Below are positions 15,863-64,000 of a DNA stretch of 64,000 nt, piece after piece (positions within the stretch are counted from its first letter, which is position 1; each line of letters starts with the position of its first letter). The notes below the pieces were generated by a model. It had not been told where the DNA came from, searched no databases, and was given only the letters and a program-made list of their open reading frames with translations. Both the position numbers and the translations under genes were made by a program. The stretch covers positions 2,976,001 to 3,040,000 of the forward strand of contig OX337239.1 of assembly GCA_946965045.2 (NCBI GenBank), in the 5' to 3' direction. This DNA comes from Epithemia pelagica. Taxonomy: Eukaryota > Protista > Bacillariophyta.

Positions 15863-16088
15863 AATTGTTGTTTCTAACAATTGCTTGCGCTTCCTTTTGT
15901 CGCCCTGGAGATTGTTGAGTCGACGCAGCATCTCCTTCCCTTTGCCTCGCACCGAGAGCCCGTTCCCGAACCGTTCCCTTGCACCAGCCAACTGGTAGCC
16001 TCCTTCCAAGCTGTCGGACCAACAAGAGTCTCCGACCTACAGCCTTGGCAGTTTCTCCTTCCCCAAATACGACGAAGAAGAAATCCTT

Positions 16089-42768: not shown

Positions 42769-43593
42769 CCACATCTTCTTTGCATCGTCGTCGTGGTGGA
42801 GTCCAGGAGACGGTAACCATGGGTGTGGTCCCAGCGGTAACGGTAACCGTTTATACGTAACTCCGATACATAATTGTTTGGTAGCACACGGTTTAGAGGT
42901 GGTGACGGTTTTGGACCAGAAGCGTAACTATAACAAAATGCAATTATTAACACACGTTTCACTCATCACCATGTCTCGTCCTTGTGAATTTCGGAACTCT
43001 GTTCTAGTTGGGGTGACATGCTGCTGGTAATGGCCATAAAGCTGCACCTTTGTGAGGCCACACGAGATTCAAAGAAGTTGCGTGTCATTTGATGGAACCG
43101 CAAAAAGAAAAAAAAACACAGTTGGACAACGCAATACTTTGTTGTCCTATAGAGAGAGAAGGTGTCCACAAAAAATAAAATAGTACATGCTACCAATACA
43201 GTGTTGACCATGACTACGTACAAGGTGCATCCTGTAACGATCCAAATAGACGGATAGAGCCGCAACAAGCACTGGCATGTGAGAATATAGCAACCATAGC
43301 ACGTCTCGCGGTCACCTAGTTTACCCAATCTACAGGATGTTCGCTTCGCTTTGCATACGACTGCAAGGACAAGCATTAGGTGAATAAAGGCTTGCCCTTG
43401 TTGTCCTTTTAGAACGTATAAAGCTCATAATAACAAAACAACCGATCTACGAATGCCCTTACGATTACGTCTTCCCAACCTATCGTAGAAATCACACGCT
43501 TCCTCTGCGAATAGAGACCAAGAGACCACCAAGAGTATCACCATAGTCGAAACCAGAGCTGCCAGAGCACGAAGAGTCGCCGCTGCTGCAATT

Positions 43594-46442
43594 ATGGACG
43601 CAGGCGGTGGAGGAGGAGCACCTCCAGCACCTCCAGGGGGAGGAGGAGCTGTCTTTGTACTTGGACCTGGACGAACTAACGACGTTCTGGACTTCACGGA
43701 ATCATCAGCCGTGAAGCTCTACTACAAGGCTATTGCTCCATTGGAGACCAAGTTCGATGGACAGCCGGACAACATTGCTGTCTTCCTTGCTTCCGTCGCT
43801 GACCGAGCTCGCCGTTTCCACTGGACGAGCATCCTGACCATCCCTGTGGCAGGAGGAGTCAGTCGCAACCTCATCAAGGATTATGCCCAAGTCACTGCTA
43901 CTGAAGTACGAACACGAGCTACGACCTATCAGGATCAACAGATGAGAGACGCGCAAAACTCGGACATGCTTTATTACTTTCTGATCGAATCATTGACAGA
44001 AACGTTTAAAGCTCAGGTCTTGTTGTTTGTGGACAACTTCACAATCAACGATGCACCCGATGGGATTTGTCTTCTCAAACAGATTGTCGTCCTCACCTAC
44101 ATCGACAATAGGGCAACTACAGCCCATATCAGAGCCACTCTCATCGATATGTCCGACAAACTGACTGAGCTTGAGGGCAATATTACCCTGTTCAACAACT
44201 GGGTGAGAACACAACAGGCCCGGCTTAATGCGCGTGGTACGGATGCTCCCGACCTACTTTCGTATCTATGGAAGGCCTACACTCATGATCAACATGACTC
44301 TGAGTTTGTGGCCTACATAAAGGACCTTCGCAATATGTACAATGATGGTCGCGCCAACCACACGAGTGCGCAACTCATGGTCCTAGCTGAAAACAAATAT
44401 AAAGAGCGAGTGCAATCAGGTGACTGGGGTCAACCATCCGAGGAACAAGCTGAGATTGTGGCACTAACTGCTAAACTCCATACAGTGGAGAAGCAGCTTA
44501 ATGCACGATCTAGCAGTCAAACGAAAAAGACTTCCTCAGGGAAGCAACAAGGCAAGGCATCGACCAAGAACTCGTCCAACAAACGCCCTGCAACGACTGC
44601 TGATGCATCCAATAAATCCAAGCAGAACAAATATGCTTGGAAGGATGTGAAACCATCTGGGAATGAGACCAAAGTGGACGGCCATCCAACAAAGAAGAAG
44701 GATGACAAGCTCTACTATTGGTGCTTGAACCACACAACGATGGCAAAGGCAAGTGGGTGCTGCATCACCCGAACGAATGCAACAACACTGCCAACCAGCA
44801 GCAATGGCAACAACAAAGCTCAGGCACTGGAAAAAATGACAACGACCAGTAGACGCGTACAGGTGGATCGAGGAAACAATGCCCGTCAAAAGGCAATGAG
44901 TGACCGCAACCCAGCATACAAAGACTGACGCGAAAAAGATATAGAGAAGAAAGAGAGAGTGGCCAGGCAATGATAAGGAAAACCAAGTCGGAAATCAGGC
45001 AAACAATCATTTCTCATTATCTGGGCAAAGTACTAATGTTGGAAACGTACAAGAAACTGCATGTGAAGATATTGATAGATCGGTGGAGCAGGGTTCATAT
45101 GACAGTCGATCCAGACCTCTGTTGGGAGACTCCACGATGAATGATAATATGAGAGATGACCATCCATCATCCTTCATTGGATGCGATATCTATGGCGCAG
45201 GTCTATGCTACCTTGGCTATGTTCAGTTGAAACCTGGATCTATAGCATGCGGACTCGCAGATGCAAGCGAGGCGGGTGTACGCTAAGCTATAGAAGTCCG
45301 GCGCGCACTCATTGCTACCACTTGCGAGTTGACGTAGTTGCTATGGCAACTACCAAGTCGAATGACGACGCGGAACTCGAGCCTCAGGCACGAGAAACCA
45401 CGTTTGACACAGACTCCGTTGTAATTCTCATCGACATTGGAGCATCAGCATGCATCACTAATGATCTTGCTGACTTCCTACAGCCTCCAACGAATGTCAG
45501 TGCTCAAGTCACAGGAATCAGTCGCCAAAAAGTGCTAGCTACGAAAAGAGGAACAGTGGCCTGGAGATTCGAAGATGACAATAGAGTGGAGCACAGGTTT
45601 GTAATTCGTAATGTTTACTATGTGCCTGATGCTCCTCACCGAATCTTGTGTCCGCAACAATGGGCGCAACAAGCCCATGATCAGAAACCCATGGCAGAAG
45701 GCACTGGGTGTATGACGACTAGTAAACATGTCGTGTTGTTTTGGGACCAAAGACGATACAGGAAGTCCATCCCATTGGACACTAAACTCAACATTGGCCT
45801 TGCAAGAACGGCATCCGGATACAAACGCTTTGCCACTTTCATGGCTAATGTGGCACACAACTGGGAACCCGAGACGGAACAAGTAGTGTTCGAGACTCAC
45901 ATCATACCTGTTGATGAATCCACTGCACCACGACAGTTGGATGACGACGACATGTCGTTTCAACCACCTGACCCAGTCGATCCGCCCACAACGACGGATC
46001 CACCAATCAGACAATATGGTGGCGATGTGCCAGCCACCACTGAAGACTTGCCAACGACAAGTCAAGTGGAGTTTGCCTTACCAGACAAACCACATGTCAT
46101 ACCTGATGACGAGGAGCCACGCACTTTAACACCACACGATGAATTGTTGCGTTGGCATTACCGATTGGGCCATGTCTCATTCCGGAGAATCCAGCTCATG
46201 GCCAAACGAAATGAGCTGCCCAAGAAACTGTTTGAGGCCAAAATTCCTTTGTGCCCAGCCTGTCAATATGGCAAGATGATAAGGCGACCGTGGAGAACCA
46301 AACCACAACAAACAGGCAAACAAGTTCGCACAGTGACAGCACCAGGACAAGTTGTCTCTGTGGATCAACAACTGGAATCCACAACTGTGGGCTTCATCGG
46401 ACAACTCAAGGGCATCTTGACAACCCGGCGGTACAAATATGC
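43594..46442 (+). mobile_element. Ty1/copia element D (gag, protease, start of integrase), 3'-truncated
   Basis: Gag KLYYKAIAPLETKFDG and YYWCLNH, protease ILIDIGASAC, WHYRLGHVSF, CPACQYGK, VVSVDQ. Confidence 0.85.
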
Positions 46443-46789
46443 CAAAGTGAAGAAGAGATGTGCAAAAGTTTGGTTTATGCATTACCCGGTGGGTGGTTTA
46501 AAGATTCACAGTTCCAACCATCTTTTCCCGGGTATCCCAATCGATCTTTCGATGAGATGATACATATATACACACAGTTTTCTGTGTTCCTAAATAGACT
46601 TTCACAAGAAAAGGAAATACAGGAAAGAAGGGGGGCTCGGTCAAGGAAGAACAGAAAATCTTCCAAATATTTTCCGAGTTTCGATTGTCAAAAAATGCTC
46701 GGCGATATCACACCGGAGGAGAAAACATTGTCTAACAAGCGTTCTGTTCGGGGATATTACAGTGAACCTGTCCAGAAAAAAAGAAAACT

Positions 46790-47010
46790 ACTGCCGGAGG
46801 GAAATGGTGTAGGTGGTATGGTGGGTAAAGAACACAAATCGACAAAACGGCTTCTTCCCTCTGAGCCACCACATGGTGTACGTGGCATGGTGCGTAGGGA
46901 AGACAAATCGACGAAACCGCTTCTTCCCTCTGAGCCACCATATGGTGTAGGTGGTATGGTGCGTAAAAGAAGACAAATTGAATAAACGGCCTCTTCCCTC
47001 TGAGCCACTG
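46790..47010 (+). repeat. 3 x ~69-bp coding-like repeat (KRLLPSEPPHGVRGMV...)
   Basis: CTTCCCTCTGAGCCAC at ~46855, ~46924 and ~46994. Confidence 0.85.
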
Positions 47011-48174
47011 GAAGATGACAGCGTTCCAGGTAATGCTCTTGTTATTGTTGTCAAAGAGGACCCCGAAGGAACGCTTCAGAAAATTGTTGATTGCAATCCC
47101 CAACCTCCTGGATTGGATGTTCAGCTTATACCAAAACCTCAAAAACAAGATCAACGGCTATTGTCGGTTCTGCCACGGGTTGGGCGAAATGACCTAGGGA
47201 AGAAGAGACAAGTTCTGACACATGAGAACGAGAAGAAAATTCAGGAACCCAAGAACACAAATCCAAACAAATTGAAACAACCACACTCACATCAACCACG
47301 ATATACAACGAAGACTATCGTTCCAAAAAAAGAGAACAGAAAAACTGTGACGACTGCCAAGAGAGCACCACAGGGAAAAACCATGGCAAAAAATACTCCA
47401 GCAGACACTGGACCTAAACAAGTGGAACCAGGAAAAACCTCTCAAACGAAGTTGTTTGCAGATCTAGATAATCAGAAACGAAAAAAGAAGGAGTTAGTGA
47501 AAGGAAAGGAAAAGAGTGACACCCGATATGCACAAGCAGCAGAACGCCGGAAAAAGAGAAAGCTGCAACTGAACAGAAATATGGACTTTATGACCCGTTT
47601 GGCTATTGCTCATGCCTGGGAGCCTGATGAAGTTTGTGACAGAGCAATATTTGTCTGTCACACCTGTGGAGTGTACAATAAAAACATTGATACTGAATAT
47701 ATGGGAACAGACGTCTTCATCCCACACAAGTCTTGTCGCAAAAGACACTGTTGTATGACGGGATGTGATATAGACCATTTCATAATAGAGTCATTTATGA
47801 CATTGTATCAACATCAATACCATCAAGACATCTCTCTGTCAGAGGGTCGATCAAGGAATCACCTGGTTTTCCTAAGTTGCAATCTTTGTCCAAACACTGA
47901 AGATATGCTGTTAGCATATGACGACTATCATCGAGACTTGCTACACATGTTCAAGGATCAAACACCAACACCTAGTTCAATGTTGTTTCTACTTTCTTTC
48001 AAGGAGGAGGGAGAAAGATGTCCAACTGATCAAGCTTCGGAGTTTGAAATATTTCATCATCATTGTCTCCTCCTTCTATCTCCGGAGGAAAAAAAGGGAC
48101 ACTATCTGACCCGTCTGAAAATGGATCCATCGACAAATGGATCTACGGTATTCAGTGGATTCTCCCTCGACTAG
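46951..48174 (+). CDS. Hypothetical Lys-rich/Cys-His-cluster protein
   Basis: 407-aa ORF with CHTC, HKSCRKRHCCMTGC and CNLC. Confidence 0.5.
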   Translation: MVWCVKEDKLNKRPLPSEPLEDDSVPGNALVIVVKEDPEGTLQKIVDCNPQPPGLDVQLIPKPQKQDQRLLSVLPRVGRNDLGKKRQVLTHENEKKIQEPKNTNPNKLKQPHSHQPRYTTKTIVPKKENRKTVTTAKRAPQGKTMAKNTPADTGPKQVEPGKTSQTKLFADLDNQKRKKKELVKGKEKSDTRYAQAAERRKKRKLQLNRNMDFMTRLAIAHAWEPDEVCDRAIFVCHTCGVYNKNIDTEYMGTDVFIPHKSCRKRHCCMTGCDIDHFIIESFMTLYQHQYHQDISLSEGRSRNHLVFLSCNLCPNTEDMLLAYDDYHRDLLHMFKDQTPTPSSMLFLLSFKEEGERCPTDQASEFEIFHHHCLLLLSPEEKKGHYLTRLKMDPSTNGSTVFSGFSLD

Positions 48175-48310
48175 GTGTTTTGAATATCCAATCAAATAAA
48201 CCACCTCCTGATTTGAAGAATCCCAAATCAACGACATCTCAGGAAAGATCTGAAGCTTCCAGGTCTCCAGGAAAAAAAAGGTCATCGGTATAGAGATTTC
48301 AGATTGGTAT

Positions 48311-49033
48311 GTGAATCTCGATCAACGCTGCAGAATGTATATCACACGGGAATCGTACATTCCATCAAAAATCGTTCTTTCAGTTGTGTTTACAAGATTG
48401 TATGATGCAATAACCAAGGGCGCAAAATGTTTACATGGGAAACTATCTCTGGTAGATCTCCCTACTAACTGTGAAGACTGTCGTATTGCGCTCAACTCGC
48501 TCATTCAAGACAGTATTCTACATGCAAAGTCAACTTCCTGTTTACACCCTTTATCATTGACGGAAATTCCACATGATATTAAAGAAGCTACAATCACAGA
48601 GGATGCCATTAAGAATTATGGAAAGAAAGTCGCAGCAAAAACGCGAAAAGAAGGAACAAAATACAGAGATAGTGGTTACAGCAAGGGTGTTTCTAAGGAT
48701 GAGTATACACAGACCATATTGGAGGAAAATTCTGCCTATCATTTGGTTCAGAAGACTATCAAAGAGTTGCAAGAGGGTGGAGCGTGTCCAATTTGTCATA
48801 ATGATGTGGAAAATTCTGAAGAAATGTATTTTTTGGAATGTGGTCACATGGTCCACAAGGTTTGTTGGAGTGGTCGGGCTGGTTTCGGTCTAGATAATTC
48901 AAAATGTCCGGTATGTGAAGCATCCGTATCAGAAAAAAAAACAGAAGGCAGTAATTTTGTTTTCTGGTTTCGAATATGCCCTGGTCAAAGAGAACTTGAT
49001 AGAAGCACAGGGTTTGGACCAAGAAAACAATGA
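48311..49033 (+). CDS. RING-H2 finger protein
   Basis: C-x2-C-x14-C-x-H-x2-H-x2-C-x13-C-x2-C (CPIC...CGHMVHKVC...CPVC). Confidence 0.75.
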   Translation: MNLDQRCRMYITRESYIPSKIVLSVVFTRLYDAITKGAKCLHGKLSLVDLPTNCEDCRIALNSLIQDSILHAKSTSCLHPLSLTEIPHDIKEATITEDAIKNYGKKVAAKTRKEGTKYRDSGYSKGVSKDEYTQTILEENSAYHLVQKTIKELQEGGACPICHNDVENSEEMYFLECGHMVHKVCWSGRAGFGLDNSKCPVCEASVSEKKTEGSNFVFWFRICPGQRELDRSTGFGPRKQ

Positions 49034-50788
49034 TGAGAACAACGACGTCCCAAATACAGAAAAAGTCATGACCGGAAATAAAGATATGCCAAATGATCGG
49101 GCAGGATTAGTAGACAAGGAAGACGATGAATCAGAGAGTGAACAAAAATACATGGAGTCAAAGTCATCCAAGTCGGACCGAGTAGATTTACCAATGGAAG
49201 AAAATCTAAAACCACCGGCCAAGGAGAATAATGAACCAATGAAAGAGGACCTCAAACCAGCGGCAGAGGAACATACCAAGTTGGATGAAAACTTGTCGAC
49301 CGAGGAACGAATCAGGAAACAAGCTCATTCTCAAAACGACAAAGGCAAAGAATCCAAGGAACAGAAAAAAGAAGTAGAGAGGAAAGGCAAAGAGAAAGCC
49401 CAAAGGAGGAAGGAGAAACACGGGAAGGCAAAGAATCCAAGGAACAGAAGAAAGAGGTAGAGAGGAAAGGCAAAGAGATAGCCCAAAAGGAGGAAGGAGA
49501 AACACGGGAAGGGCAACGCAAAGAGAAAGCCCAAAAGGAGAAAGGAAAATCTCAGGATGGGCAAGACAAAGAGACAATGAAAATTGACGGTCATACCACC
49601 AAGAACGCCAATTAAATGAATGTACCTAGGGTGCTACCAGAGGATCCCAACAACAAAAGGAATGAAAGGAACGTAAATGAAACTCCTCGAGAACCGACCA
49701 TAAAGAGCACGACAACAAGGGAACCAACACAAACAACACCTATCTCACAGTCACAACCCTCAAAGCTTTCTCGATTATCGAATTCGGTTCCTCCAAGGAA
49801 CCATCCATCTTCACTAGAACAAGGTTCACTAAGTGCACCTGTTCCAAGAACATCAAGCAAAGAATTTCGTTCACATTCACGAAATTCTGTATCTTCACGA
49901 GGGAATTTTCCACGGTCAAGAAATTCTGCTTCTCCACATGGTTCGTCGAGTATTGCTGGTGGTCATCCAAAATGACAAAGACAAAAATTCCAGGGTCCTC
50001 CGGGAAGAGTTCATCCATATGGTAGTCAAAAAGATCGATATCATGATTCAATGAGGGAAAGTCTCGATTTCCAAAGTGTCCAACGAATTGTTGAATTTCC
50101 ACCACCACCAGAAGGCTATATGTTGGTGCGGAAACCTGAATATCAAGAAAATCACATGTCATACCAGTCAGTACATCATCCAAATGATGGAGGTAGAGAA
50201 AGATCACTATATTTACCAACCGACAGAGATAGAGGATATCCAAGAGAATTTCGACAATCGGGACGGCATGACGAAGACTCTAGAAACACGAACTGGATGG
50301 AAAGAGGAAGTAGTAGAGAATATCAAGGAAAGGAGGAGTTCAATAGATCGAGAAGGGTGAGAGAAATACGAGACGTGAGAAGAAACGAAGATGAATGGTC
50401 TGTTGATCCCCATAGAAGTCCAGAATCTTCTAAAAAACGGAGTAGAAGAAGAGCACCACATAGATACGATCAGGAAATTGGAACTTAGGATGATGAGTAT
50501 GATCATGCGGGTAAAGAGTATAGAGTGCGAAGAGAACAAGATTCTATCCCTCAAGGACACAGGGAGAGAGATTATCAAGAGAATGAACTCAGAGAAAGAG
50601 AATACCCAGGTCGGAGATCACAAGGGGAAGATGATTATGTACAAAGAGAAAACAGATATAGAATTGACTACCCAGACGATCAGAATGAACGAAATAACAG
50701 AGAAAGTCAATCCCCCAAACATCAAAGGGAAAATGGAGAAGATTATAGTAGCGAAGAAGATCAAGGATATAGGTCAGTTCCTTCTTGA
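48915..50788 (+). pseudogene. Low-complexity Lys/Glu then Arg/Asp/Ser-rich coding tract with premature stops
   Basis: 49616-50788 is one frame with two isolated stops (49973 TGA, 50486 TAG). ~83-bp repeats at 49344 and 49427. Confidence 0.5.
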
Positions 50789-51864
50789 ACAATTATATAA
50801 TTAAACCAAGACAAGAAATATTGATCATTAGAAAAATGAACGATATACAAGCAAGTAAACAGCAAGGGTTGGATTGTTCCCAAGCAGAACTTGAGAAATA
50901 CATCAAGCAAAAACCACAAAGAGCCAGTTTGACTATATTGTCAATAACAAGACACAGTGACGTTGCTCACGAGACATTGACCTTTTTCCAGCAATCCGAA
51001 TCTGGGAAAATGGAATTCTTCTTCGGGTTGTTGTCTTTGTGCTTTGGTAGTCCCACAGATCAGAAGATATTTCTGGAAGTTTGTTACGAGAAAGTCGATC
51101 CGTGGGAGTTCAGAAATGGGATTGACGGGAAACTGATTGACAGACTACCAAGTCTATATTCAATGGCTCTATCTAGAATTGGGGATAGAACAGAGGACAT
51201 GGCAAGTCATTGTTTCATTGGTCCACACACTGGGTTGTCAGTTAGAAGATGCAATGTTGAATGCTTGACTAAGACATGCCCGTGTGCCTTTCTGGTTGAA
51301 TGTGTGTTAAACCGGAGCAACAAGAAACCACGTCAGAAGTCAAAGAAGTCTGCATCTATTTTCGAAGAGCGTATATCGGTAATACGAACAAGGAAGGGTT
51401 TGGTGGATGATGTATACAACCCAATATTCAGGGATATTATACTGTTCTTTCCATATGCTTCAATATTTTTCACTGGTACACGGACCATGCTTCCATTCCA
51501 AAGTCATGGTCACACTATCAGGATAAGAAATTCTACACAGTTGTACCCTTGCCGATTTCGTGGTTACGATTGTGTCATTAGACAGGTCAACCAGCAACAG
51601 GTGGATATATCCGGGAAGTTCTAAAGTGTTGGTCACTGGATTGGTTATCCTTATCCCGAAATGTACCAACGATCGAGCATTGTTTCCAATTCAATTATGC
51701 AGAGAGTGGCATACCACTACTGGCACCAGATTATTACCCTATCAACGAAGTGGTTACTCCAGACCATTGTCAACAAACAGGTAGTTCACACAAACTACGA
51801 TGTCGATATCGCAAATTATTGCAAGAAAGCACAACAAACAAATGCCATTGTCGTCGTTATGTAA
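50785..51864 (+). pseudogene. Cys-cluster protein, weakly AWS/SET-like
   Basis: C..ECLTKTCPC...ECVLN followed by ISVIRTRKG. A single TAA at 51622 lies in an otherwise open frame. A nearby CHC could be post-SET. Weak. Confidence 0.3.
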
Positions 51865-52727
51865 TGGGAGCACTACATCGAAACATTGGGAGTAACTGTT
51901 TGAGATATGACCAACGATCCATGGGCGATGTTGTATTCCTTGTCACCATTCGTGACACTAGAGGTCGTCCAGAAGCACTTTCCATACTACGAATTTCTAC
52001 TTTATCATCTGAAAGTGGCTTACTTTCATTGATGCAAAAGGTTTCTACTAAATTAACGTCAAAGAAGGCATTTGTGAAGGGAAACTGTAGACGCGATAGA
52101 GGTGATTTTGGTGGAATGATGGTAATTGGACAAGCTTCTAAACAATCGACAAACGAATCCCGAATTTCGGACGCTGCCATGAAAGGGTATCCTGGTTTGT
52201 CAAGGATCTTACCCAAAATAAACAGTGGAATCCGCAATTTTGCAGAGAATACGTACCCCGGATTAATTTCCTGTATTAAACATATCGATGAAAACTCAGG
52301 AGTCCAACCTCCTGGTATGGTTGGAGGTTCCAATGGATCTACTTCAAGTGCCATGATCATGAGTGTTGATCTCATGAATGCTACTCATTATGATGTATCA
52401 GATGCATCTATGAGTTTCACAGTTTGGACAGAAACTTGTCCAGATTCTACAAAAGACTGGTACTTCGTCTTACCTAATATTCTTGTGAGAATGAAAGGAG
52501 ACAGCAGGACATATATGGGATTGTCTTTACTCTTATTTCATGGTCTAAGCATACTTTGGGATGGACGGGTTTTTTGGCATGGAACATCATACCACACTTT
52601 GAAACAAGGGGAACACACGGTTGGATGGTTTTGGGGAGCAAATTCCAGGACAATTAAGGCAGTTGTGAATGAAAACCGAAAAGAGCACGGCATTTCGGAG
52701 GAACAGCAATACTCATTGAATTGTTAA
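51750..52727 (+). CDS. TET/JBP-like 2OG-Fe(II) dioxygenase (copy 1)
   Basis: HxD in MNATHYDVSD, WYFVLPNI, and distal His in LFHGLSILWDGRVFWHGTS. Aligns end to end with 63311-64000. Confidence 0.7.
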   Translation: MVTPDHCQQTGSSHKLRCRYRKLLQESTTNKCHCRRYVMGALHRNIGSNCLRYDQRSMGDVVFLVTIRDTRGRPEALSILRISTLSSESGLLSLMQKVSTKLTSKKAFVKGNCRRDRGDFGGMMVIGQASKQSTNESRISDAAMKGYPGLSRILPKINSGIRNFAENTYPGLISCIKHIDENSGVQPPGMVGGSNGSTSSAMIMSVDLMNATHYDVSDASMSFTVWTETCPDSTKDWYFVLPNILVRMKGDSRTYMGLSLLLFHGLSILWDGRVFWHGTSYHTLKQGEHTVGWFWGANSRTIKAVVNENRKEHGISEEQQYSLNC

Positions 52728-53639
52728 CCTTCTCGAATGGTTAACTTACTTTGTCATAACATCAAAGCAGTATCGGAAGAATGGCATATAATTGTAATAC
52801 GCACCAAATGAGATTGTAAGAAGCCAAACCGACCATTCTTCGGCCTCGTCGATGTGATCAAATGGGTCCGTTGTCATTGTCTCGCAGAGGGGGACATATA
52901 AATCTGAATAAATAATCACGGGCGCCCCCTTTGTAACCTACGAAGGGCCTCGCCATGCCTCGCTACGCACCGCCTGGCATCGCCCGGCCCCTAGTTATGT
53001 GTTCGCTAGTGGGTACCGTGGTCGCTATTTGGCCCCTACGTGAGCGATTTGCCCCCAAAGGGCACCCCTAGTTTAGTCATCATAATTTCTGATAGTTTGA
53101 TTGTTGCAAGCCGTATATTGCGTCTGGCCGTCAGTTTTTATTCAGTTTATCAGACCCAAGTCTGTTGTTTCCCCACTGTTCGCCGGAAGGCAAGCGCCTG
53201 ATCAACGCTCGGGAGTTGTTCGCGCTAAGCGGCTTCGTCACTCGCTCGCTTGCGTCATCTCTGTGACTTGTTTTTGTCACTGTGGGACCCACTCGCTAAT
53301 TTGTGACTTGCGACTGCACAACGTACCGTGCACGTGCTCGTACACGTGGACTGTCCATCCACGCGCTTCGTACGACTCAACTATATAAGCCTGCTGGCTT
53401 TTGACACGTGCCTGCTTGCTCGCGAAATCGCCGGTTCGCCGACTCGCGGATTCGCCGATCGCTAGCTCGCTCGCTCGCGGAATCGCCGGACGACTACTCG
53501 CCGATTCACTCGCAGATTGTTGGCTCACAGAAATTCGCTCCTCTCATCACAATTGCAAATTTCTGCACAAGAACAAGCCTTCCCTTGCCATCCGTTTGAC
53601 CTTCTACTACCCTCCTACCCTTCATCCGACCCTTGAACC

Positions 53640-55718
53640 ATGGCCGCAAATGCCTTCCGTACTGCACTGGGCCGCTGTGGCTACAACAATGCTACCGTTG
53701 GGTACCTAACGCAACAGGGCTTCACAACAACGGATCAGTTCCTGGAGTTTCCCATCAACGAAGTAAAGCCCATGCTGAAGACATTAGCCAAGAACCTACC
53801 CGACGGTGTCACCCTACCCTACCAGTTCAACCTGAAGTTCCTTGGCTTCCGAATGTGGTTGGAATACCGTTCTGTCCGTGGTCAGGACCTTGATGCTGGT
53901 GCTTATACTGGTGACGTAATCACCAAGTGGATGAAACGCGTAACGGAACTCGCGAATGCCACCACCACTGATGGTCAGGATGACCCAGTACCACCCAAAA
54001 GGCTAACGAACCTTGCCGATTGGGAACGTCACGACGGAATGTGGCGCACGTACTTGGGTCAGCACCGTAATCCGACAACGGGAGTGCCGCTCACCTACGT
54101 ATTGCGTGAGGAGTCCGACGTACCGGACGACGCACTAACCGCCGATTACGACTGCATTGACGACGACCTAGTCGCGACCACTCGTCATGAGGGGGACCAG
54201 TACAAAGCCGACCGACGCAGAGTGTATGAGCTGTACTACCCTCTTATCTACGATGGTCCGGCATGGACGTTTGCTAAAACGCATGCAAAATCAAAGGACG
54301 GCCGTGAGGCCTACCTAACCGTCAAGCGGCAAGCCACTGGACAGGCCGCGAGCATCCTGCGCAAGAAACAAGCTTATGCGCAGATCGCAAATGCTAAGTT
54401 TACAGGACGAGGGAAGTACCGCTTCCATGACTACATCCACCGTCACCAACATGCGCACAACACCCTAGAAGAGCTTGGCGAAACGGTCGCGGAAACGAAA
54501 AAAGTGACCGATTTCATGAATGGGATCACCGATCCGACGCTCGTCCAAGCAAAGACCGTCGTCAACGGTGACCAGGAGAAGTTGGAGAACTTCGAAGCGT
54601 GCCAGCAATATTTCTTGACTGTGCACAGTGCCGCCAAAACCGAAACGCAGGACGACTCTCGAAAGATCGCCGCTGCTAGTACCACCCCAAGCAAAGGAAA
54701 GGGCAAAGGGCGCAATCAGAAAAAGAGCAAGAAAAAGAAGGACCGCGTTCATGCTGGTCACTACGATGCCGACGAATGGGCAGACCTGACGGAGGACGAA
54801 CGCAAACAAGTCCAGGCTCTTCGCAGAGAGCGCAAAGAAAAGCGGAAGCTTGGATCCGTCACCACAGACGACTCTTCCAACGCATCGTCGAAGAGATCGA
54901 AAACGTCGCATGGGAGTACTGCTGAGGACGCAATCTCAGTAGACATTGATGAAGACGACGCTAAGCCTGAGGCTAAGACCAACGTATCGGTCATTATGGA
55001 AGTAGACGAGAACTTGCTTGACTCCTCTGTTGACAACGTACCGTCGCCAGACAAGCACTCTAAGTTCCGCGCTTCCGCCTCACCTGCCAAATCATCCGAT
55101 GATGATTCGCAGCCGACAAAGTCCTCAGCTGGTAACAGCTTTGGACGTTTCGCGCATAAGGCTAAAGCACAACCGAACGAACCCGGATCTGCGTCCGTCA
55201 AATCCGTACGTACTCGCCCCATGGGGGAATATGAGACCTATCCACCTATGTGGCAATGGGAAGAGGACGGACGTCCTGATATGAGTCATATGACCATCCG
55301 GCCAGTCCCGGAACACGGTGACATCTTTGTGAAGCTGCCGCTACCGGTCAAAGGCAAGTATGCTGAAGGGACTCGCAACGTCCGCTCACTTACCAAGCAT
55401 GACCAAAGTATGCTGAAAGGAAGCTTCCGCGAAGAGATCGACACTATTGTACACAACAGTCCAATTTGGTCTTGGCGCTGGTCTAAAATGTCAGGCTATG
55501 AACGAGAAGAGCGCCAAATGTACCATGTGTGCAGACGCTTAGCCGAGCACACGGAAGTGTTCGACGAAGCTTTGAAATACACTATGCTTGCCAATGGACA
55601 ATTGGCTGCTGCAGAGCGAAGGCGTAATGTATGCGGTCGTTATTCCGCCGATCTTGAATTCGATGTCCGTGATCCGAATGTCTCTGACAAGTCTGCCGAC
55701 ATGTCTAATTCCTCCTGA
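53640..55718 (+). CDS. gag: copia gag (692 aa)
   Basis: Intact ORF after the PBS/leader. VPLTYVLRE, DGPAWTF and DGREAYL are homologous to the gag of element B. Confidence 0.85.
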   Translation: MAANAFRTALGRCGYNNATVGYLTQQGFTTTDQFLEFPINEVKPMLKTLAKNLPDGVTLPYQFNLKFLGFRMWLEYRSVRGQDLDAGAYTGDVITKWMKRVTELANATTTDGQDDPVPPKRLTNLADWERHDGMWRTYLGQHRNPTTGVPLTYVLREESDVPDDALTADYDCIDDDLVATTRHEGDQYKADRRRVYELYYPLIYDGPAWTFAKTHAKSKDGREAYLTVKRQATGQAASILRKKQAYAQIANAKFTGRGKYRFHDYIHRHQHAHNTLEELGETVAETKKVTDFMNGITDPTLVQAKTVVNGDQEKLENFEACQQYFLTVHSAAKTETQDDSRKIAAASTTPSKGKGKGRNQKKSKKKKDRVHAGHYDADEWADLTEDERKQVQALRRERKEKRKLGSVTTDDSSNASSKRSKTSHGSTAEDAISVDIDEDDAKPEAKTNVSVIMEVDENLLDSSVDNVPSPDKHSKFRASASPAKSSDDDSQPTKSSAGNSFGRFAHKAKAQPNEPGSASVKSVRTRPMGEYETYPPMWQWEEDGRPDMSHMTIRPVPEHGDIFVKLPLPVKGKYAEGTRNVRSLTKHDQSMLKGSFREEIDTIVHNSPIWSWRWSKMSGYEREERQMYHVCRRLAEHTEVFDEALKYTMLANGQLAAAERRRNVCGRYSADLEFDVRDPNVSDKSADMSNSS

Positions 55719-55724
55719 TGGAGT

Positions 55725-58700
55725 GTGCCCTGTGTATCCGCTGCCGAAGCAGTAAAAATTGATAAAACGAATCTTATTGTTCAATCAAATGCACATGTAG
55801 GCACCCATTATAATTATTCTAAAAGTTTCGCACATCGTCTATGTGCTATGAACACCGACGAATATGGTGTTGAGACCATTGAGCTCACCTGTGAGTTGGA
55901 CTCACATGCGGACACCTGTGCCGTGGGAAGAGACTTCGTAATGCTCTCCGAAGCCCACCGCTATATCAGTGTGCATCCGTTCGCGGAGGAATATAGCCCG
56001 CTGACCAATGTCCCTATTGCGACTGTTGCTACTGTCTGGACTGACAGCGAAAACCAGTCTTACTTGCTTGTTATCCACCAAGCATTGTTTTTAGGGGACC
56101 GTATGGGCAGTTCGTTACTCTGTCCGAACCAGATGCGTGCCCATGGCATCGTTGTCAACGACGTACCTAAACAGTTTGACCCGCACAGCACGCATAGTAT
56201 CCACGTACCGGATGCGGATCTCACCATCCCGCTCACCATGGCTGGTGTGATCAGTGGTTTCGCCACTCGCAAACCCACTTCTGACGAGCTGGAACACTTG
56301 CCACGAGTTGTGCTAACTGCCGATAGCCCATGGCAACCTCGTTCTACCGCCTTTGCGGACGCGGAGGAGAAACTGGGTGTAGCTGCCGCTACTGTCGTTC
56401 GCAATGGCGATCCGAATTCGATTGCCGCATCCTCCATTCCACGACTCATCAAAGCAGTGCGAACGTACCAGCATGCTTTTGCCAATCCATCACCCGATCT
56501 GGACGCCGACGCACAAGGCGACGACCTATACGAACGCTTAATAGCGACGGTCACTGTTCATCCAGGAAAAGAGGAAACTGATGTAGTCCCGGAGGATAAA
56601 CGTGAACGTCGGCTGTGCATGATCAAGACTGCTAACAAGTCTTCCCCAGCCGATCCTGCTGGAAAGGGAGTGCTTGATGCAGCCGTACTGTCACAACGTT
56701 GGGGCATTGGTTTACCCAAAGCGAAGAATACGCTTAAAGTGACGACGCAGGCTGGAGTACGAAACGTATTAATCCCATCTGAGCGTAAGGTCCGTAAGAA
56801 GGCACCGTGGCTCAAATTCCCTAATGTGAAAGGCCGTTGGTTCTCGGACGAGATGTTTGCCAAGGAAGTATCACTGAACGGGGACACGGGCGCCTCGATC
56901 TTTACAGATGGCAAAGGATTCGACCACGTTTATCCCTGGAAGTCAAAAAAGCAACATCCTGAAGGATTGATGTCTTTGATTCACAATGTAGGGATCCCCC
57001 AAACAATGGTATCTGATGGTGCCCGAGAATTGTTCCTAGGGAAGTCCCGTGAAATATGCAACGAGTACCGCATAAAGATGGAGAAAACGGTTCCTTATAT
57101 TCCATGGCAGAACGCCGCCGAAGCGAGCATTCGTGAACTAAAGAAGGGAGTTGTCAAGGTTATGAGGACGACCGGCGCACCACGACGTTTATGGAGCTAT
57201 GCTCTTAAATGGTGCTCACACGTACGGCAACTCACGGCATCCAATATCCCTGAATTAGATGGACGTACACCGTTCGAGCATGTAATTGGCTCAACGCCAG
57301 ACATCTCTCCATTAGCCATGTTCCAATTCTATCAGCCGGTGTATTATCGCATGCCCATGGCACAGTTTCCCTTCGAAAAAAGACTGATTGGCCGATGGTT
57401 GGGCTTAGCCGATGATTGCACCGATGATATGGCCTATGAAATCCTAACGCAAGAGGGCAATCATGTCACACAGAAAGATGTGTGGGCCATTCCGGAGGAC
57501 GACCTGAAGAATCCGACGATTCATCAGCAGTTGTTGGACTATGATGCCGCTATTCAAACGCAAATGAAAGAGCCGCCATCTGATGGCACAACTGGGAGCG
57601 ATCCACCCCCAGACCTCTTTGAAGAAGGTGAACTTTTAGAGCCCTTGTTCCCAGAGGCCGAAGCCCTGGAATCCGACGCGTACACGCCGGAGGAACTAGA
57701 CGAATATCTCACCGCTGAAGTCATGCTGCCGCGAGGAGGTGAAAGCGCTCGAGCGAAAATCATTGGACGCACGAAAGATTCTCATGGACGACCAATCGGT
57801 GAGCGTGACCCTAATCCAATCCTTGATACCCGGTACTACGATGTACAGTTTCCGGATGGATCGGTCGAGTCGTATGCAACGAATATGATCGCAGAGAATC
57901 TGTATTCGCAAGTTGACCCAGAGGGCAATGCGTTCAATACATTGAAAGCCATTGTGGGTCACCGCAGTGATGAGACCGCAGTTAAGCGAACAGACGCATC
58001 GTTCCTTGACGGCACATCACACCACACAACGAAAGGCTGGGAATTGCAATGTGAACTGTCCGATCAATCAACTGTTTGGCTGCCGCTCAAAGACGTCAAG
58101 AATGGAAATATGATTGAAGCCGCCGAATACGCAGTATCCACTGGCATCGCAAAAGAGCCTGCTTTCGCATGGTGGGTGCCACGTGCACTTCGCAAACGAG
58201 ATCGCATTATCAAAAAGGTAAAGTCACGTTATTGGAAGCGAACGCACAAGTATGGCATTGAGTTGCCCCACTCTGTGGAAGAAGCCCTGGCGATTGACCG
58301 CCGAACGGGGACTGACTTCTGGCGTAAGGCTATTGAGAAAGAAATGAAGAACGTTGGCATTGCTTTCGAATTTCCAGCTGATGGCGAAGTGCCTTCTGGA
58401 TACAAGCATATTCCCTGTCATATGGTTTTTGACATCAAATCAGACCTGCGACGAAAAGCACGGTTAGTGGCCGGAGGCCACAAAACTGATCCACCCAAAG
58501 AATCGACCTATTCTAGTGTGGTATCACGCGATAGCGTACGCATTGCTTTTACTATCGCTGCACTAAATGGTCTTGATGTTCTCGTCGGGGATGTGCAAAA
58601 CGCATATCTCAACGCACCGACTAAAGAGAAGACCTATACCACAGCGGGACTCGAATTTGGACCAGATAAGGTTGGACAACCTGCACTGATAGTGCGCGCA

Positions 58701-59279
58701 TTATATGGTCTCAAAAGTTCTGCCGCAAGGTGGCGTGATCACATCGCCGCCACGCTCCGCGATATGGGATTTAAGATGTGTCAAGCTGATCCGGATGTAT
58801 GGCTTCGAGCGAACACTCGACCATCTGATGGGTTCCAGTATTACGAGTATGTTTTGGTCTATATTGATGATCTGCTGATTGTTAGTCATGATCCCAAAAC
58901 CGTGATGCAGGACCTGCAGAGGCGCTATACGACCAAGCCCGACAGCATCAAACCGCCAGACGAATACTTGGGATCCGAAATACGGCGTTATACCATACCC
59001 GACACGCAAGATCCGTCGAACCGTGATCGTTGGGCCATGCCCGCTGACAAGTATTGTAAGCGTGCTCTTGCCGAAGTCGAAACGGAACTGGAGAAATCCG
59101 GAGAAAAGCTGAAGTCAAAAACACAACGCAATTGCTTATCATCGGACTCGTGAAGCGCAAGCTGCTGGACTTGTGCGCATTGCATGGGAAGAAGGTGAAA
59201 CGAATCTTGCCGATATCCTCACCAAACTGTTACCCGGACCTCGATTGCGATTCCTGGCCCAACGTATCATGTGGTAGCA
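55725..59279 (+). pseudogene. pol: copia pol (PR-IN-RT) with a deletion joining mid-RT to the end of RNase H
   Basis: ELDSHADTC, WFSDEMF, MVSDGARE, QNAAEASIRE, RKARLVAGGH, GDVQNAYL, VLVYIDDLL. Then a jump at ~59125 to HNAIAYHRTREAQAAG...NLADILTK in another frame. Confidence 0.9.
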
Positions 59280-60213
59280 CCCCTTTTAGATCCAAAATGG
59301 GATCGCCCCCTTTTGAAGAATAGTCCGACGTACTGGACCGGCCTCTGCTGACATGACGAACTAAACGAAGTTGCCCACCCCGATTTTGTTCGCGGGGACT
59401 GAATAAATAATCACGGGCGCCCCCTTTGTAACCTACGAAGGGCCTCGCCATGCCTCGCTACGCACCGCCTGGCATCGCCCGGCCCCTAGTTATGTGTTCG
59501 CTAGTGGGTACCGTGATCGCTATTTGGCCCCTACGTGAGCGATTTGCCCCCAAAGGGCACCCCTAGTTTAGTCATCATAATTTCTGATAGTTTGATTGTT
59601 GCAAGCCGTATATTGCGTCTGGCCGTCAGTTTTTATTCAAATCCTTCCACATCTGTTGTGTTGAACGCCAGACAAAATACTTATTGTCTGACATGAAACA
59701 CTTACATAAACTGACACATCTGCTATGTGAATCCGATGGACAAAGACAAGACTTGCAGATCATAGGGATACCACGACGAACCGACTCTGATCTCGTTTCG
59801 ATTATTCCACATGAACTGTCATACAGAGCAGCCTGGCAATAGCGTTCGTTCCCAAATCCAGAACATCCACTCAGGTGTACACCACACCCATAACAACTGT
59901 CACGGCATCTTGGATTTGATCCATATTTGTGAACACACTTTCGGGTAATCAACCAATTACTAGTCGGGTTATCTGTCAAAATACAGGATGGACAACGTCT
60001 AAGGGCAGCGTCATGCGCCCCCAAAACGCACACCCCATACGCGCCGTCGGCATGCGCCATTTTTCGTACCCGGTTTTTTTATACGGATTTACACCATTTT
60101 GACTAATCCCTTCCACCACCACGCACATACAACATCATACACATTCACGGCGACCCTAGCTTCCACGCACGCACACTCCCATCTTCCACGCACAGAGAAC
60201 TTACCTTCTAAGC

Positions 60214-60453
60214 TGAATAAAAACTGACGGCCAGGCGCAATATACGGCTTGCAACAATCAAACTATCAGAAATTATGGTAACTAAACTAGGGGTGCCCTT
60301 TGGGGGCAAATCACTCACGTAGGGGCCAAACAGCGATCACGGTACCCACTAGCGAACACGTAACTAGGGGCCGGGCGATGCCAGGCGATGCCTAGCGAGG
60401 CATGGCGAGGCCCTTCGTAGGTTACAAAGGGGGCGCCCGTGATTATTTATTCA
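60214..60453 (-). mobile_element. Solo LTR of the element E family, 4-bp TSD AAGC
   Basis: 240 bp, reverse complement of the E LTR with roughly 8-10 substitutions. AAGC at 60210-13 and 60454-57. Confidence 0.93.
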
Positions 60454-60600
60454 AAGCACACTGACCTTGCCCTCCACGTCCAAAACACTCTGAACACAAA
60501 GTACCAACCTCATCGGAACAAGGCATCTTTACACCCTCTCCACAGGTGCAATAACACAAGGGCAAACCCCCAATCTCTCCTATCCCATTCTCCAATGACA

Positions 60601-60732
60601 CCAGCGGAAGCCACTCACCTTTTGCATCCCATGCTCCGAAAGCACCAGCGGAAGCCACACACCATTAGCATCCCATGCTCCGAAAGCACTGGCAGAAGCC
60701 ACCCACCTTTTGCATCTCAGGCTCCGGAGCAA
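60601..60732. repeat. 3 x 44-bp tandem repeat
   Basis: CCAGCGGAAGCCAC..CC.TT.GCATCCCATGCTCCGAAAGCA at 60601 and 60645, with a diverged copy at 60689. Confidence 0.9.
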
Positions 60733-60734
60733 AG

Positions 60735-62200
60735 ACACCCTTCTATAGCTTGAATCACTCTGAATTTCGGTAGAGACACTAGGGGTATCATAGGCATGGA
60801 TGTCATAGGCTCTGAACTCGTCGATCGCGGACCAAAAGTCTTGTTGTAGACCATACCAGTGTCGCGTTGTCGTTGTCTCAACATTCCATGGACATGGAGC
60901 AAAGTAACCCTTCTATAGCTTGAATCACTCCAAATTTCGGTAAAGACACTTGCGCTATCATAGACATGGATTTCATAGGCTCTAAACTCGTCTACCATGG
61001 ACCAAAAGTCTTGTAGTAGACCATACTGGTGTGGCGTTGTCAATGTCCCAAACTTCCATGGACATGGAGCAAAGTAACCCTTCTATAACTTGAGTCGCTC
61101 CAAATTTCGGTAAAGACACTTGCGCTATCATAGACATGGATGTCATAGGCTCTGAACTCTTCTATCGCAGACCAAAAGTCTGGCTGAAGACCATACCAGT
61201 GTCGCGTTGTCGATGTCCCAAACTTCCATGGACATGGAGCAAAGAAACCCTTCTATAACTTGAGTCGCTCCAAATTTCGGTAGAGACACTTGGGGTATCA
61301 TAGGCATGGATGTCATAGTCTCTGAACTCGTCAATCGCGGACCCATGGAGCAAAGTAACCCTTCTATAACTTGAGTCGCTCCAAATTTCGGTAGAGACAC
61401 TTGGGGTACCATAGGCATGGATATCATAGGCTCTGAACTTATCTACCATGGACCAAAAGTCTTGTAGTAGACCATACTGGTGTTGCGTTGTCGATGTCCC
61501 AAACTTCCATGGACATGGAGCAAAGAAACCCTTCTATAACTTGAGTCGCTCCAAATTTCGGTAGAGACACTTGGGGTACCATAGGCATGGATATCATAGG
61601 CTCTGAACTCATCTACCATGGACCAAAAGTCTTGTTGTAGACCATACTGGTGTTGCGTTGTCGATGTCCCAAACTTCCATGGACATGGAGCAAAGAAACC
61701 CTTCTATAACTTGAGTCGCTCCAAATTTCGGTAGAGACACTTGGGGTACCATAGGCATGGATATCATAGGCTCTGAACTCATCTACCATGGACCAAAAGT
61801 CTTGTTGTAGACTATACCAGTGTCGCGTTGTCGATGTCCCAAACTTCCATGGACTTCTTCGAGCAAAGACATTTTTCTGTTCATCGAATCGACCCAGGTC
61901 TTGGTACATATCCTCGGGATATCATAGCCATGTATACCATAGGCTCTGATCTTATGTGCCGTCAAGATAAAGGCTTGCAATAGATCAGATCGGTTTGGCG
62001 TTGTCGCCGTGCCAAAATTGTATGGACATGGAGCAAAGAGATCCTTCTCGTCATGGAATCGGTCCAGATTTTGGAAGAGACCCTTAGTGTATCATTCTTA
62101 TGGATACCATAGGATCTGATCTCGTGATCTGTGATGAGAAAGGCTTGCAATAGACCATACCGATATAGCGTTGGCCTTGACATTGTCCAAAAATTTCGTA
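60735..62200. repeat. Tandem array of ~170-bp units (about 8-9 units, one shortened, distal ones diverged)
   Basis: ACCAAAAGTC at 60831, 61001, 61171, 61452, 61622 and 61792. Confidence 0.92.
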
Positions 62201-62608
62201 GGCTCATTTTATCCTCCATTGAATCGTATGACAAAGCAAACAAGACTCAGAAATTCTTAGCGTTATTTGAATTTTCCCCATAAAAACGATAAGAACTGAG
62301 AGATAGTCAGGATCAGTTGTTTTCTCCGAAGTACATCTTCTTGCAACCGCAAACAGAAATCCTCTTACCATTACTCTTCGAGAAGACCGTTCGATATCGT
62401 ATAAAAGATGGAAGACTCGTCTTGGTTGAATACTGTTGCAATATGGAATCTCATCTCGAATACACGATTTGATGTTGAAATTTCGTTTTGTCTTCGTAGC
62501 GGTGATAGGAATGTTATTCTCACTGAAGATGTTGCGGCAGCCAAATGAATCAAAAACGAATTCAAGGATCTTGTAGACAGGATTATTAATCACGAGGGAC
62601 GACTTGAT

Positions 62609-63271
62609 GTGATTTCCATTATGAATGGTAATCAAAAAACAGAAGAGCACCAGTGTCAGATGGGCACATGGGCAGACAGACCGGAATTCCTTGACGGACC
62701 CTTCATCTGGAAACAAAACTTCCTCGAGACATGTCTTGTTTGTGGTAAATTCACCTGTAATCAACGGGTAACAATATACACATGCAAGCATTGTTTTGGT
62801 CCTTTACAAGTACCTGGGTCGTCTTCATCTTGTGATACCACTTGTGCAAAGACTCCCTGTACTTCATCCATGAACATGTCCTTCGTATGGGAGTTCTGTA
62901 TGACTTTACGAGAGGCATTCCAAGCGTGGTTTGACTTCCACAAGTTTGGAAAAAACAGAAAGATTCCCTTTTTTGAATATATCCCAGCCGAAACTTGTGG
63001 GATTTTGACAAAAACGGTCGGTAAAGTATGGAGAGAAAAATTGGAGCCTTATTACGACGAGGATACCAAGTGGCGTAGTCCATCTCATTTCATTCACACC
63101 GAGAAACAATGGGCATTGTGGCTGATTTCTTCACCACCTGGTTGCTCCTTTCGCAACTATATGCCTATTTTTACTGCATGTTATCATATAGCACAGGAAA
63201 ATCCAAAGAAACATGCTGCTGGTGTATCACAGAGTGCTCGCAAGAAACAAAAGACGTGGAATGCTCCCTGA
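62609..63271 (+). CDS. Cys-rich 'NYMP' partner gene 2 (220 aa)
   Basis: CLVCGKFTC..YTCKHC..CDTTCAKTPC. The C-terminus VWREKLEP...QWALWLISS...RNYMPIFTACY matches partner 1. Confidence 0.7.
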   Translation: MISIMNGNQKTEEHQCQMGTWADRPEFLDGPFIWKQNFLETCLVCGKFTCNQRVTIYTCKHCFGPLQVPGSSSSCDTTCAKTPCTSSMNMSFVWEFCMTLREAFQAWFDFHKFGKNRKIPFFEYIPAETCGILTKTVGKVWREKLEPYYDEDTKWRSPSHFIHTEKQWALWLISSPPGCSFRNYMPIFTACYHIAQENPKKHAAGVSQSARKKQKTWNAP

Positions 63272-63310
63272 ATTTGTTTTTCCTTCGTGATGAATGCATC
63301 CAGAAAGAAT

Positions 63311-64000
63311 TTATAATGTTCCGCTACGAATACCTTGAACCGTCTTGGTTATACCATGGTCCTCTCTTGTTTTGTTGACAGTTGCATTCATAGACCTGGA
63401 ACTTACTGCCCAAAACCAACTAATAGTGTCGTTCTTCATGTTCCCATCTTTATGTTGTCTTTGTGTGTGTATTGACGTTCCATGCCGGATCACACGTCCA
63501 TCCCATAGAACCGAAACCCCATGAAATAGTTGTATACAAAGACCATGGTATGTAGTACCATCATACTCCACAAGAATATGCGGCAAAACAAAGAACCAAT
63601 TTTGGGAGTCACCTGGGATTGTCTCTGTCCAGATTGCGAATGAAACAGAACCATCGTGAACATCATAATGTGTCGTGTTCATGAGGTTCAAAATCAGGGT
63701 AATGGCTGAGGTCATACCTCCGACTCTTCCTCCGAATTCACTAGGCATTTCTTCGCCAGCTGAATCTTCTAGATACCGGAATGTTGGAATCACCCCAGGA
63801 TATTCGCGTTCACGGAACCTTTTTGCCGCTGTACTTATTTTCGGCAGTATCATCGATAATGTCTTGTCCTTTGTAAATAATTTCTCGGAAACGAAAGTAG
63901 AACCGTTTCCTCTTGCCGCAGTATTACCAACAGTGGTCATAGATCCCAAGTCTCCCTTATTACATCTGGCATTGGCCGCCTTTCTCTGAGACCCAGTACG
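63311..64000 (-). CDS. TET/JBP-like 2OG-Fe(II) dioxygenase (copy 2, runs off the window)
   Basis: MNTTHYDVHD, WFFVLPHI, LFHGVSVLWDGRVIRHGTS. The frame is open to 64000 (NARCNKGDLGSM matches NCRRDRGDFGGM of copy 1). Confidence 0.7.
   Translation of the reverse strand, partial: RTGSQRKAANARCNKGDLGSMTTVGNTAARGNGSTFVSEKLFTKDKTLSMILPKISTAAKRFREREYPGVIPTFRYLEDSAGEEMPSEFGGRVGGMTSAITLILNLMNTTHYDVHDGSVSFAIWTETIPGDSQNWFFVLPHILVEYDGTTYHGLCIQLFHGVSVLWDGRVIRHGTSIHTQRQHKDGNMKNDTISWFWAVSSRSMNATVNKTREDHGITKTVQGIRSGTL

Follow-up and report, generated by a model that had tools for sequence, protein, structure and literature searches.

A stretch of 64,000 nucleotides from the diatom Epithemia pelagica (GenBank assembly GCA_946965045.2, contig OX337239.1, positions 2,976,001 to 3,040,000 of the forward strand), referred to here as the window and numbered from its first letter, carries in its right part two pairs of convergent genes that appear to belong to a giant DNA transposon. 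Each pair is composed of a gene for a dioxygenase resembling the TET/JBP family (TET1 and TET2) and a small gene for a Cys-rich protein (P1 and P2) of a family that we call NYMP. The window is transposon-rich eukaryotic DNA and shows 99.4% identity to contig ctg1266l of the ENA assembly ERZ21939226. The TET1 open reading frame (ORF) at 51750-52727 on the plus strand and the TET2 ORF at 63311-63949 on the minus strand can be aligned over 206 amino acids (aa) with an E value of 2e-61, and all motifs that a preliminary description of this DNA had named were found in the dioxygenase pair. The P1 ORF (52746-52919, minus strand) and the P2 ORF (62609-63271, plus strand) have homologous C-termini (pairwise E 5e-7) sharing the block W..WL..NYMP.F..C, and the hidden Markov model (HMM) of the NYMP family recognizes both, with E values of 3e-24 for P1 and 6e-56 for P2. 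The spacer between the converging genes is 18 bp in the TET1/P1 pair (52728-52745) and 39 bp in the TET2/P2 pair (63272-63310), so that the mirror layout of convergent pairs given in the preliminary description was confirmed. That description had also taken the dioxygenases for old paralogues. A recent segmental duplication of the modules was indeed ruled out, since TET1 and TET2 are merely 42% identical.

Other loci of the same assembly were collected via paralogues of these genes (L002, L003, L004, L008, L009 and L010). The gene models of the window, corrected in the light of the homologues, are as follows.

46236-46982, plus strand: weak and tentative remnant of the gene termed X388/394 (blastp to the 388-aa gene of L010, E 2e-5, 23% over 140 aa)
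48254-49030, plus strand: RING-finger ORF preceding TET1 (matched by Pfam RING models at E 3e-8 to 1e-3)
50869-51474, plus strand: N-terminal region of TET1, in the frame of the ORF 50785-51624 (tblastn with a 647-aa paralogue, residues 10-215, 34% identity)
51475-51581, plus strand: lesions of TET1, namely a frameshift of 1 nt near 51480 and a TAG stop in frame at 51579-51581 (translations and sequence)
51582-52727, plus strand: C-terminal part of TET1 with the double-stranded beta-helix catalytic domain, containing the ORF 51750-52727 (homology and fold)
52746-52904, minus strand: C-terminal piece of P1 (NYMP), 52 codons and the stop (homology, 75% identity to the paralogue P0191)
52905-59639, plus strand: Copia-type long terminal repeat (LTR) retrotransposon inside P1 (LTRs at 52905-53144 and 59400-59639, AAATC flanks)
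59644-60060, minus strand: N-terminal Cys-rich piece of P1 (NYMP), 139 codons, in frame with 52904 (family homology)
60214-60453, minus strand: inverted solo LTR of the same Copia family, directly upstream of P1 (96-97% complementary to both LTRs)
60582-62179, no strand assigned: two repeat arrays separating P1 from P2, one of 44-nt units (60582-60726) and one a 170-nt satellite (60726-62179)
62408-63271, plus strand: P2 (NYMP, 'B' type), full ORF as in the paralogue P0175, with 62609-63271 as the remaining ORF
63311-64000, minus strand: last 229 codons of TET2 including the catalytic domain, the gene extending past the end of the window (homology)

Both modules of the window are damaged remnants and mostly dead; only the TET2 part looks intact. 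The N-terminal region of TET1 is matched by other family members as well, and at the site of the TAG codon TET1 reads LRLCH*TGQPA (asterisk, stop), as compared to LRLRHKDGQPA in a paralogue. An intron at the change of frame was considered and ruled out, as the paralogue alignment is contiguous there and the gap is only 14 nt over expectation. In the numbering of the family member P0001, residues H156, D158, D161 and H220 are present in TET1, and position 219, which is Arg in 52 of 58 family members, is occupied by Trp. P1 is split by the Copia element. Upon its removal in silico, the segments 60060-59644 and 52904-52746 fuse exactly in frame to give 191 codons. Both pieces are spanned by the paralogues P0191 and L002:3889-5157, relative to which P1 is without about 44 internal and about 160 N-terminal residues. 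P2 has a full form in L002 (P0175, 291 aa) and is interrupted in the window by an in-frame TGA at 62546-62548 (codon 47). The L002 copy of TET2 encodes 647 aa and shows 94-97% DNA identity. The RING ORF at 48254-49030 weakly matches the RING of a 543-aa gene in L010 (E 4e-4).

Several further observations were made on this part of the window. The Copia element in P1 is very young. Its two 240-nt LTRs are 100% identical, and a single TGA (55716-55718) stands between gag (53640-55718) and pol (55725-59153), which share a reading frame. Its copy in the ENA contig differs by single-nucleotide polymorphisms and a 21-nt indel in pol (1135 vs. 1142 aa). More Copia-type elements, with gag_pre-integrase, RVT_2 and integrase matches, are located upstream of the pairs, at 43500-48200 and 16000-23500. 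At position 62546, contigs of the public runs X1-X3 have G (GGA, like L002) where the window has T, and contigs identical to the window occur elsewhere in X1-X3. In a run from a second organism, a 238-nt contig covers the 3′ junction of P2 and TET2 (63242-63476) with 5 differences; therefore, a related strain or species carries the same junction.

The better-preserved loci reveal a larger unit. A gene for a protein of about 1000-1380 aa is followed on the same strand by NYMP-A, then either by NYMP-C on the opposite strand or by the 170-nt satellite, then by NYMP-B; converging on the latter are, in this order, the TET-like gene, a RING ORF, a RING-containing ORF and X388/394. Depending on the copy, there are 1-3 NYMP paralogues per element. 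The block is complete in L010, and in L002 it lacks only the start of the large gene, which overruns the locus end. The same gene order was found in L008 and L009, both upstream on the window's own contig, and in L004, where a Copia element is inserted between TET and NYMP; L003 is a TET-NYMP pair. The TET-like gene of L008 is without the HxD part of the profile.

NYMP is located at the 3′ end of the TET-like gene in seven of the seven TET-like loci examined in the genome, with spacers of 5, 18, 39, 39, ~105 and 726 bp. The pairing that the preliminary description had regarded as conserved across old duplicates thus recurs throughout these loci, and the opposite situation it had envisaged, NYMP homologues mostly unlinked to TET-like genes, was not seen in the loci examined, with one exception in L009. 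The notion of a 'two-gene module' can be kept only in part: the pairing persists across diverged copies, but the module is the convergent junction within a block of about seven genes. Likewise, what had been called a TET gene is actually the 3′ portion of an extended gene array that includes RING. One of the short spacers lies in L008 (11101-11106). In four copies the stop codons are 5-39 bp apart, and the transcripts must overlap at their 3′ ends or share a bidirectional terminator. On the minus strand of L010 (11983-15561), the RING ORF 15561-13954 and the TET ORF 13950-11983 are in the same frame with one stop between them, and the upstream 543-aa and 388-aa ORFs abut the RING and TET ORFs. 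This array fits a single large RING-RING-TET gene.

Homologues of the 170-nt satellite are found in L002 (5172-9765) and L010 (11390-11839), in each case beside the NYMP-B gene. The satellites of the window and L010 are up to 83% identical, as compared to about 27-45% for the neighbouring proteins. The satellite is either under constraint, possibly as an array bound by protein, or spreads independently.

In comparisons of the old copies, synonymous sites are saturated (synonymous difference, pS, about 0.8), and the nonsynonymous difference (pN) amounts to 0.19 in NYMP, 0.38 in TET and 0.31 in the transposase; two mis-framed pairs were excluded. When the window is compared with L002, P2 has a pN/pS ratio of 0.20 and TET2 one of 0.25. 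These results mark NYMP as a genuine gene of the element, maintained by purifying selection, and its pairing with TET as inherited gene order rather than an independent two-gene unit.

The large gene at the head of the block seems to be a transposase. Homologues of ~1000-1380 aa are present in L002, L008, L009 and L010. The nearest ESM-Atlas clusters of the large protein are those of Plavaka (PF18759), with a score of 0.97 and 225 of 256 features shared, which is a lead and not a test. An alignment of six homologues contains D..GD..CxxC..HxxxH..E in order, the catalytic residues being read from the sequence alone; D..GD..C(2)C..H(3)H..E is the CMC signature (PMC12730594). Judged by language-model similarity and motifs, the carrier appears to be a Plavaka-like (CACTA/CMC-type) element. 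The linkage to a transposase homologue thus agrees with the transposon-borne origin suggested in the preliminary description, whereas the KDZ class that it had in mind was not borne out. Pairing with NYMP was not seen outside the genome: the metagenome contigs L005 and L007, which are unrelated, have a transposase homologue that converges directly on the TET-like gene, and NYMP is missing.

An AlphaFold model of the TET-like domain, built on a 58-sequence alignment, has a mean predicted local distance difference test score (pLDDT) of 88.4 and a predicted TM score of 0.85. In a Foldseek search of the PDB, the top matches are TET2 (E 1.6e-8), CMD1, CcTet and NgTET1. VIA-align gives Z scores of 15.3 for TET2, 14.8 for NgTET1, 14.0 for CcTet and 12.9 for CMD1, and about 12.3 for AlkB homologues, which align over a shorter length; AlkB and PHD-type structures lie at Z 11-12, and the TET/JBP-family structures align over 40-70 more residues than these. 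Among the AFDB Swiss-Prot models JBP2 and JBP1 come first, followed by TET1-3 and NgTet1, and the first AFDB clusters are fungal 'Tet-like 2OG-Fe(II) oxygenase' (E 1e-10; 2OG, 2-oxoglutarate). The TET/JBP fold with an iron triad, as proposed in the preliminary description, is therefore supported by the model and the fold searches. We assign the family to the TET/JBP fold by predicted fold similarity and motifs; Pfam is silent. Profile PF20515 matches marginally in two of the 58 family members (E 0.02), and a profile search of PDB sequences with the enzyme family gave only chance matches and no TET.

The enzyme family is large. In an exhaustive HMMER search, 646 cluster representatives, mostly metagenomic, were recovered, and E<=1e-10 was reached by 390 of these. 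The TET-like domain is usually C-terminal in proteins of 550-1700 aa, and Bacillariophyta clusters are among the enzyme's ESM-Atlas neighbours. A word-indexed protein search returned only the query proteins or near copies, and no record matched exactly the gene models guessed for TET2 and P2. The paralogue P0003 of L004 (10001-12862, 953 aa) has a repetitive 'PPKDSEQATE' tail of about 550 residues after the TET domain, and its N-terminal region is in another frame.

The iron triad is nearly invariant in the 58-member alignment (H156 in 58, D158 in 57 and H220 in 58 sequences) and is present in both TET1 and TET2. D161, at HxD+3, is invariant (58/58). The residue at this position hydrogen-bonds the cytosine N4 in CMD1 (D350), NgTET1 (D234) and TET2 (N1387) (PMC7854593). 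D161 argues for a cytosine-type substrate, because it would sit at the N4-reading position.

At least nine diverged NYMP proteins were identified, every one of them in the present assembly. Their basic N-terminus contains repeats of NPY[KN]K and is followed by a core rich in Cys and His (CPxC ... CYGCGVH ... CKxC ...) and a helical C-terminal domain ending in W..WL..FG.F.NYM..F..CY. The N-termini of P0190, P0191, P0192 and L010:7467-8540 bear 3-4 copies of the short basic motif NPY[KN]K(K/R), which may serve in nuclear localisation or docking. The structural model of NYMP has a pLDDT of 54, only the helical C-terminal part (residues 121-225) being moderately confident. Pfam gave no match to NYMP, fold searches (Atlas and PDB-wide) gave nothing above TM 0.33 or Z 5.2, and an ESM-Atlas feature search reached a score of only 0.76 with no family match. 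The partner thus belongs to no recognised family, in line with the preliminary description.

Given the homology, fold, gene order, lesions and purifying selection described above, we conclude with good confidence that the stretch represents the inner parts of two old giant Plavaka-type cut-and-paste transposon copies, placed head to head, whose transposase genes have been lost. Since in the better-preserved copies the transposase and NYMP point towards TET, two RING genes and X, the TET-NYMP pair is the place inside the element where the two converging gene sets meet, and it was inherited together with the element. The left module, in which weak remnants of an X388-like and a RING gene precede TET1 converging on P1, and the right one (P2 converging on TET2) face each other with their transposase sides. 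In the L002 copy of TET2, RING genes follow. To the left of the satellite L002 has the transposase gene and NYMP-A on the plus strand, where the window has TET1 and an inverted P1. Two head-to-head copies with deleted transposase ends are the likeliest origin of the mirror layout.

As to the substrate, the anti-silencing role and the function of NYMP, we infer the following. As an Fe(II) dioxygenase, the TET-like domain would act on 5-methylcytosine in DNA, flipping the base out and oxidising it. The target would most likely be the DNA of the element itself, and such oxidation would reverse methylation-based silencing. NYMP may be an element-encoded zinc-binding accessory, encoded on the same strand downstream of the transposase, like TnpA of En/Spm; most likely it would bind the element's DNA or repeats, aiding transposition or targeting the oxidase. 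TnpA of the CACTA element En/Spm is a second lineage-specific protein encoded on the same strand downstream of the transposase, which binds subterminal repeats and counters methylation of the element. NYMP differs in being Cys-rich, and the analogy is positional only.

A number of results weigh against this explanation. Profile PF18759 does not match the transposase homologues even at E 10, the transposase copies of the diatom show CxC in place of the CxxC of the metagenome homologues, and a search of L010 for long terminal inverted repeats gave none that was convincing. No transposase homologue was detected anywhere in the window at E 1e-4. The Tet_JBP profile (PF12851), by which the preliminary description had proposed to verify the enzymes, yields no score for TET1, TET2, 10 full-length relatives or 58 family members. 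The Tet_JBP-fold and Plavaka assignments both rest on fold or language-model similarity together with motifs. The NYMP HMM has no match on the contigs of other organisms; because NYMP is found in this assembly only, the NYMP-TET link is lineage-specific. In L009, one NYMP locus has no TET-like gene within 10 kb. RNA evidence was not obtained, the only sequencing runs containing the stretch resembling DNA assemblies, whose contigs reach 500 kb. Finally, in a sequence-inferred register anchored on F237 as the base-stacking aromatic, which lies 6 residues past the Arg in TET2, NgTET1 and CMD1, the position of the Arg that binds the C5-carboxylate of 2OG (R1896 in TET2, R289 in NgTET1) corresponds to N231. 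Residue 231 is Asn in 42 of the 58 members; the window's TET1 has Glu and the window's TET2 has Asn. The distal His is preceded by a conserved WDGRxIRH with two Arg residues. In its fold and in the residues for iron binding and base reading the family thus appears to fit TET/JBP, but the co-substrate site does not. Because Asn occupies the Arg position, activity and co-substrate are uncertain.

We also considered that NYMP is not a transposition accessory but a dedicated partner or targeting subunit in a complex with the TET-like enzyme, the pairing reflecting co-regulation. This is rather unlikely, although NYMP lies 3′ of every TET-like gene examined in the genome, with spacers of 5-39 bp in four copies, and both genes are under purifying selection. 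The TET-like genes of L005, L006 and L007, from other organisms, are without NYMP, NYMP-A is located directly behind the transposase and several kb from TET, and the L009 locus has NYMP genes without TET. The many diverged copies, most of them with frameshifts, stops or insertions, make it very unlikely that the pairs are host genes, i.e., a duplicated cellular DNA-modification unit that merely happens to be in transposon-rich DNA. Linkage to the multi-copy transposase-like gene is constant in the genome and holds in unrelated contigs too. In favour of host genes are pN/pS values well below 1 between the window and L002 and a window devoid of transposase. A 2OG oxygenase acting on a protein or small molecule, TET-like only via the common double-stranded beta-helix, would agree with the silent Pfam Tet_JBP profile, the AlkB and PHD-type Z scores of 11-12 and the missing canonical Arg, but it is highly improbable, since all TET/JBP structures rank first with 40-70 more aligned residues, the HxD+3 Asp is invariant, an aromatic residue (F237) is at the base-stacking position and the transposon context parallels that of the fungal TET-positive elements (PMC12730594).

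The explanation as a giant Plavaka-type transposon has precedents. TET-positive DNA transposons are known in fungi and include PlavakaB of Agaricus and Gymnopus (Kojima 2025, PMC12730594; Iyer et al. 2014 cited there). Like the diatom element, they are cut-and-paste and multi-copy, mostly decayed, and have a TET/JBP-fold dioxygenase beside the transposase, for which anti-silencing has been proposed; the closest AFDB fold clusters are also fungal Tet-like proteins. Unlike them, the present element resides in a diatom, is far larger, has a TET domain at the end of a RING-RING array and carries extra NYMP genes and satellites. Its enzyme has HxD in place of the HxE of the PE type, with PF12851 silent and PF20515 marginal. 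Giant Plavaka elements with accessory genes PAG1-3 were reported in red algae (Bostrychia preprint, 10.1101/2025.02.11.637652). These are similar in being 17-19 kb long and in having several accessory genes, one of them with a 2OG-oxygenase domain, and tandem repeats beside the accessory genes. Compared by description, they differ in that the oxygenase is fused to ParB and an N6-adenine and SET methyltransferase belongs to the cassette, whereas RING fingers and NYMP are found here. CMD1 of Chlamydomonas (PMC7854593) is likewise an algal TET-fold protein with HxDxxD...H and a structural match at Z 12.9. In CMD1, the canonical C5-carboxylate Arg points away and does not bind 2OG, vitamin C being used (PMC7854593). 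This Arg is kept in the CMD1 alignment, whereas the present family has Asn and two Arg residues before the distal His (WDGRxIRH). No literature linking TET-carrying transposons or giant Plavaka elements to diatoms was found.

TET-carrying transposons are a proposed route by which mobile DNA may erase a methylation mark of its host. To these, the locus adds an orphan Cys-rich accessory family that accompanies the enzyme in every copy examined and is maintained by selection, a large hidden enzyme family whose 646 cluster representatives are unrecognised by Pfam, and an unusual active site that differs from TET where the co-substrate binds. New here are the constancy of the NYMP-TET junction, the evidence for selection, the size of the family, the active-site comparison and the remnant status of both window modules. 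As a long shot, the replacement of Arg by Asn and the WDGRxIRH motif could mean that the enzyme uses another co-substrate or binding mode, like CMD1 with vitamin C, and, with the NYMP zinc protein as its DNA-targeting subunit, makes a novel base modification shielding the diatom transposon from silencing. If this were true, a Pfam-invisible TET-like family, widespread in marine eukaryote metagenomes, would write an undescribed DNA base modification.

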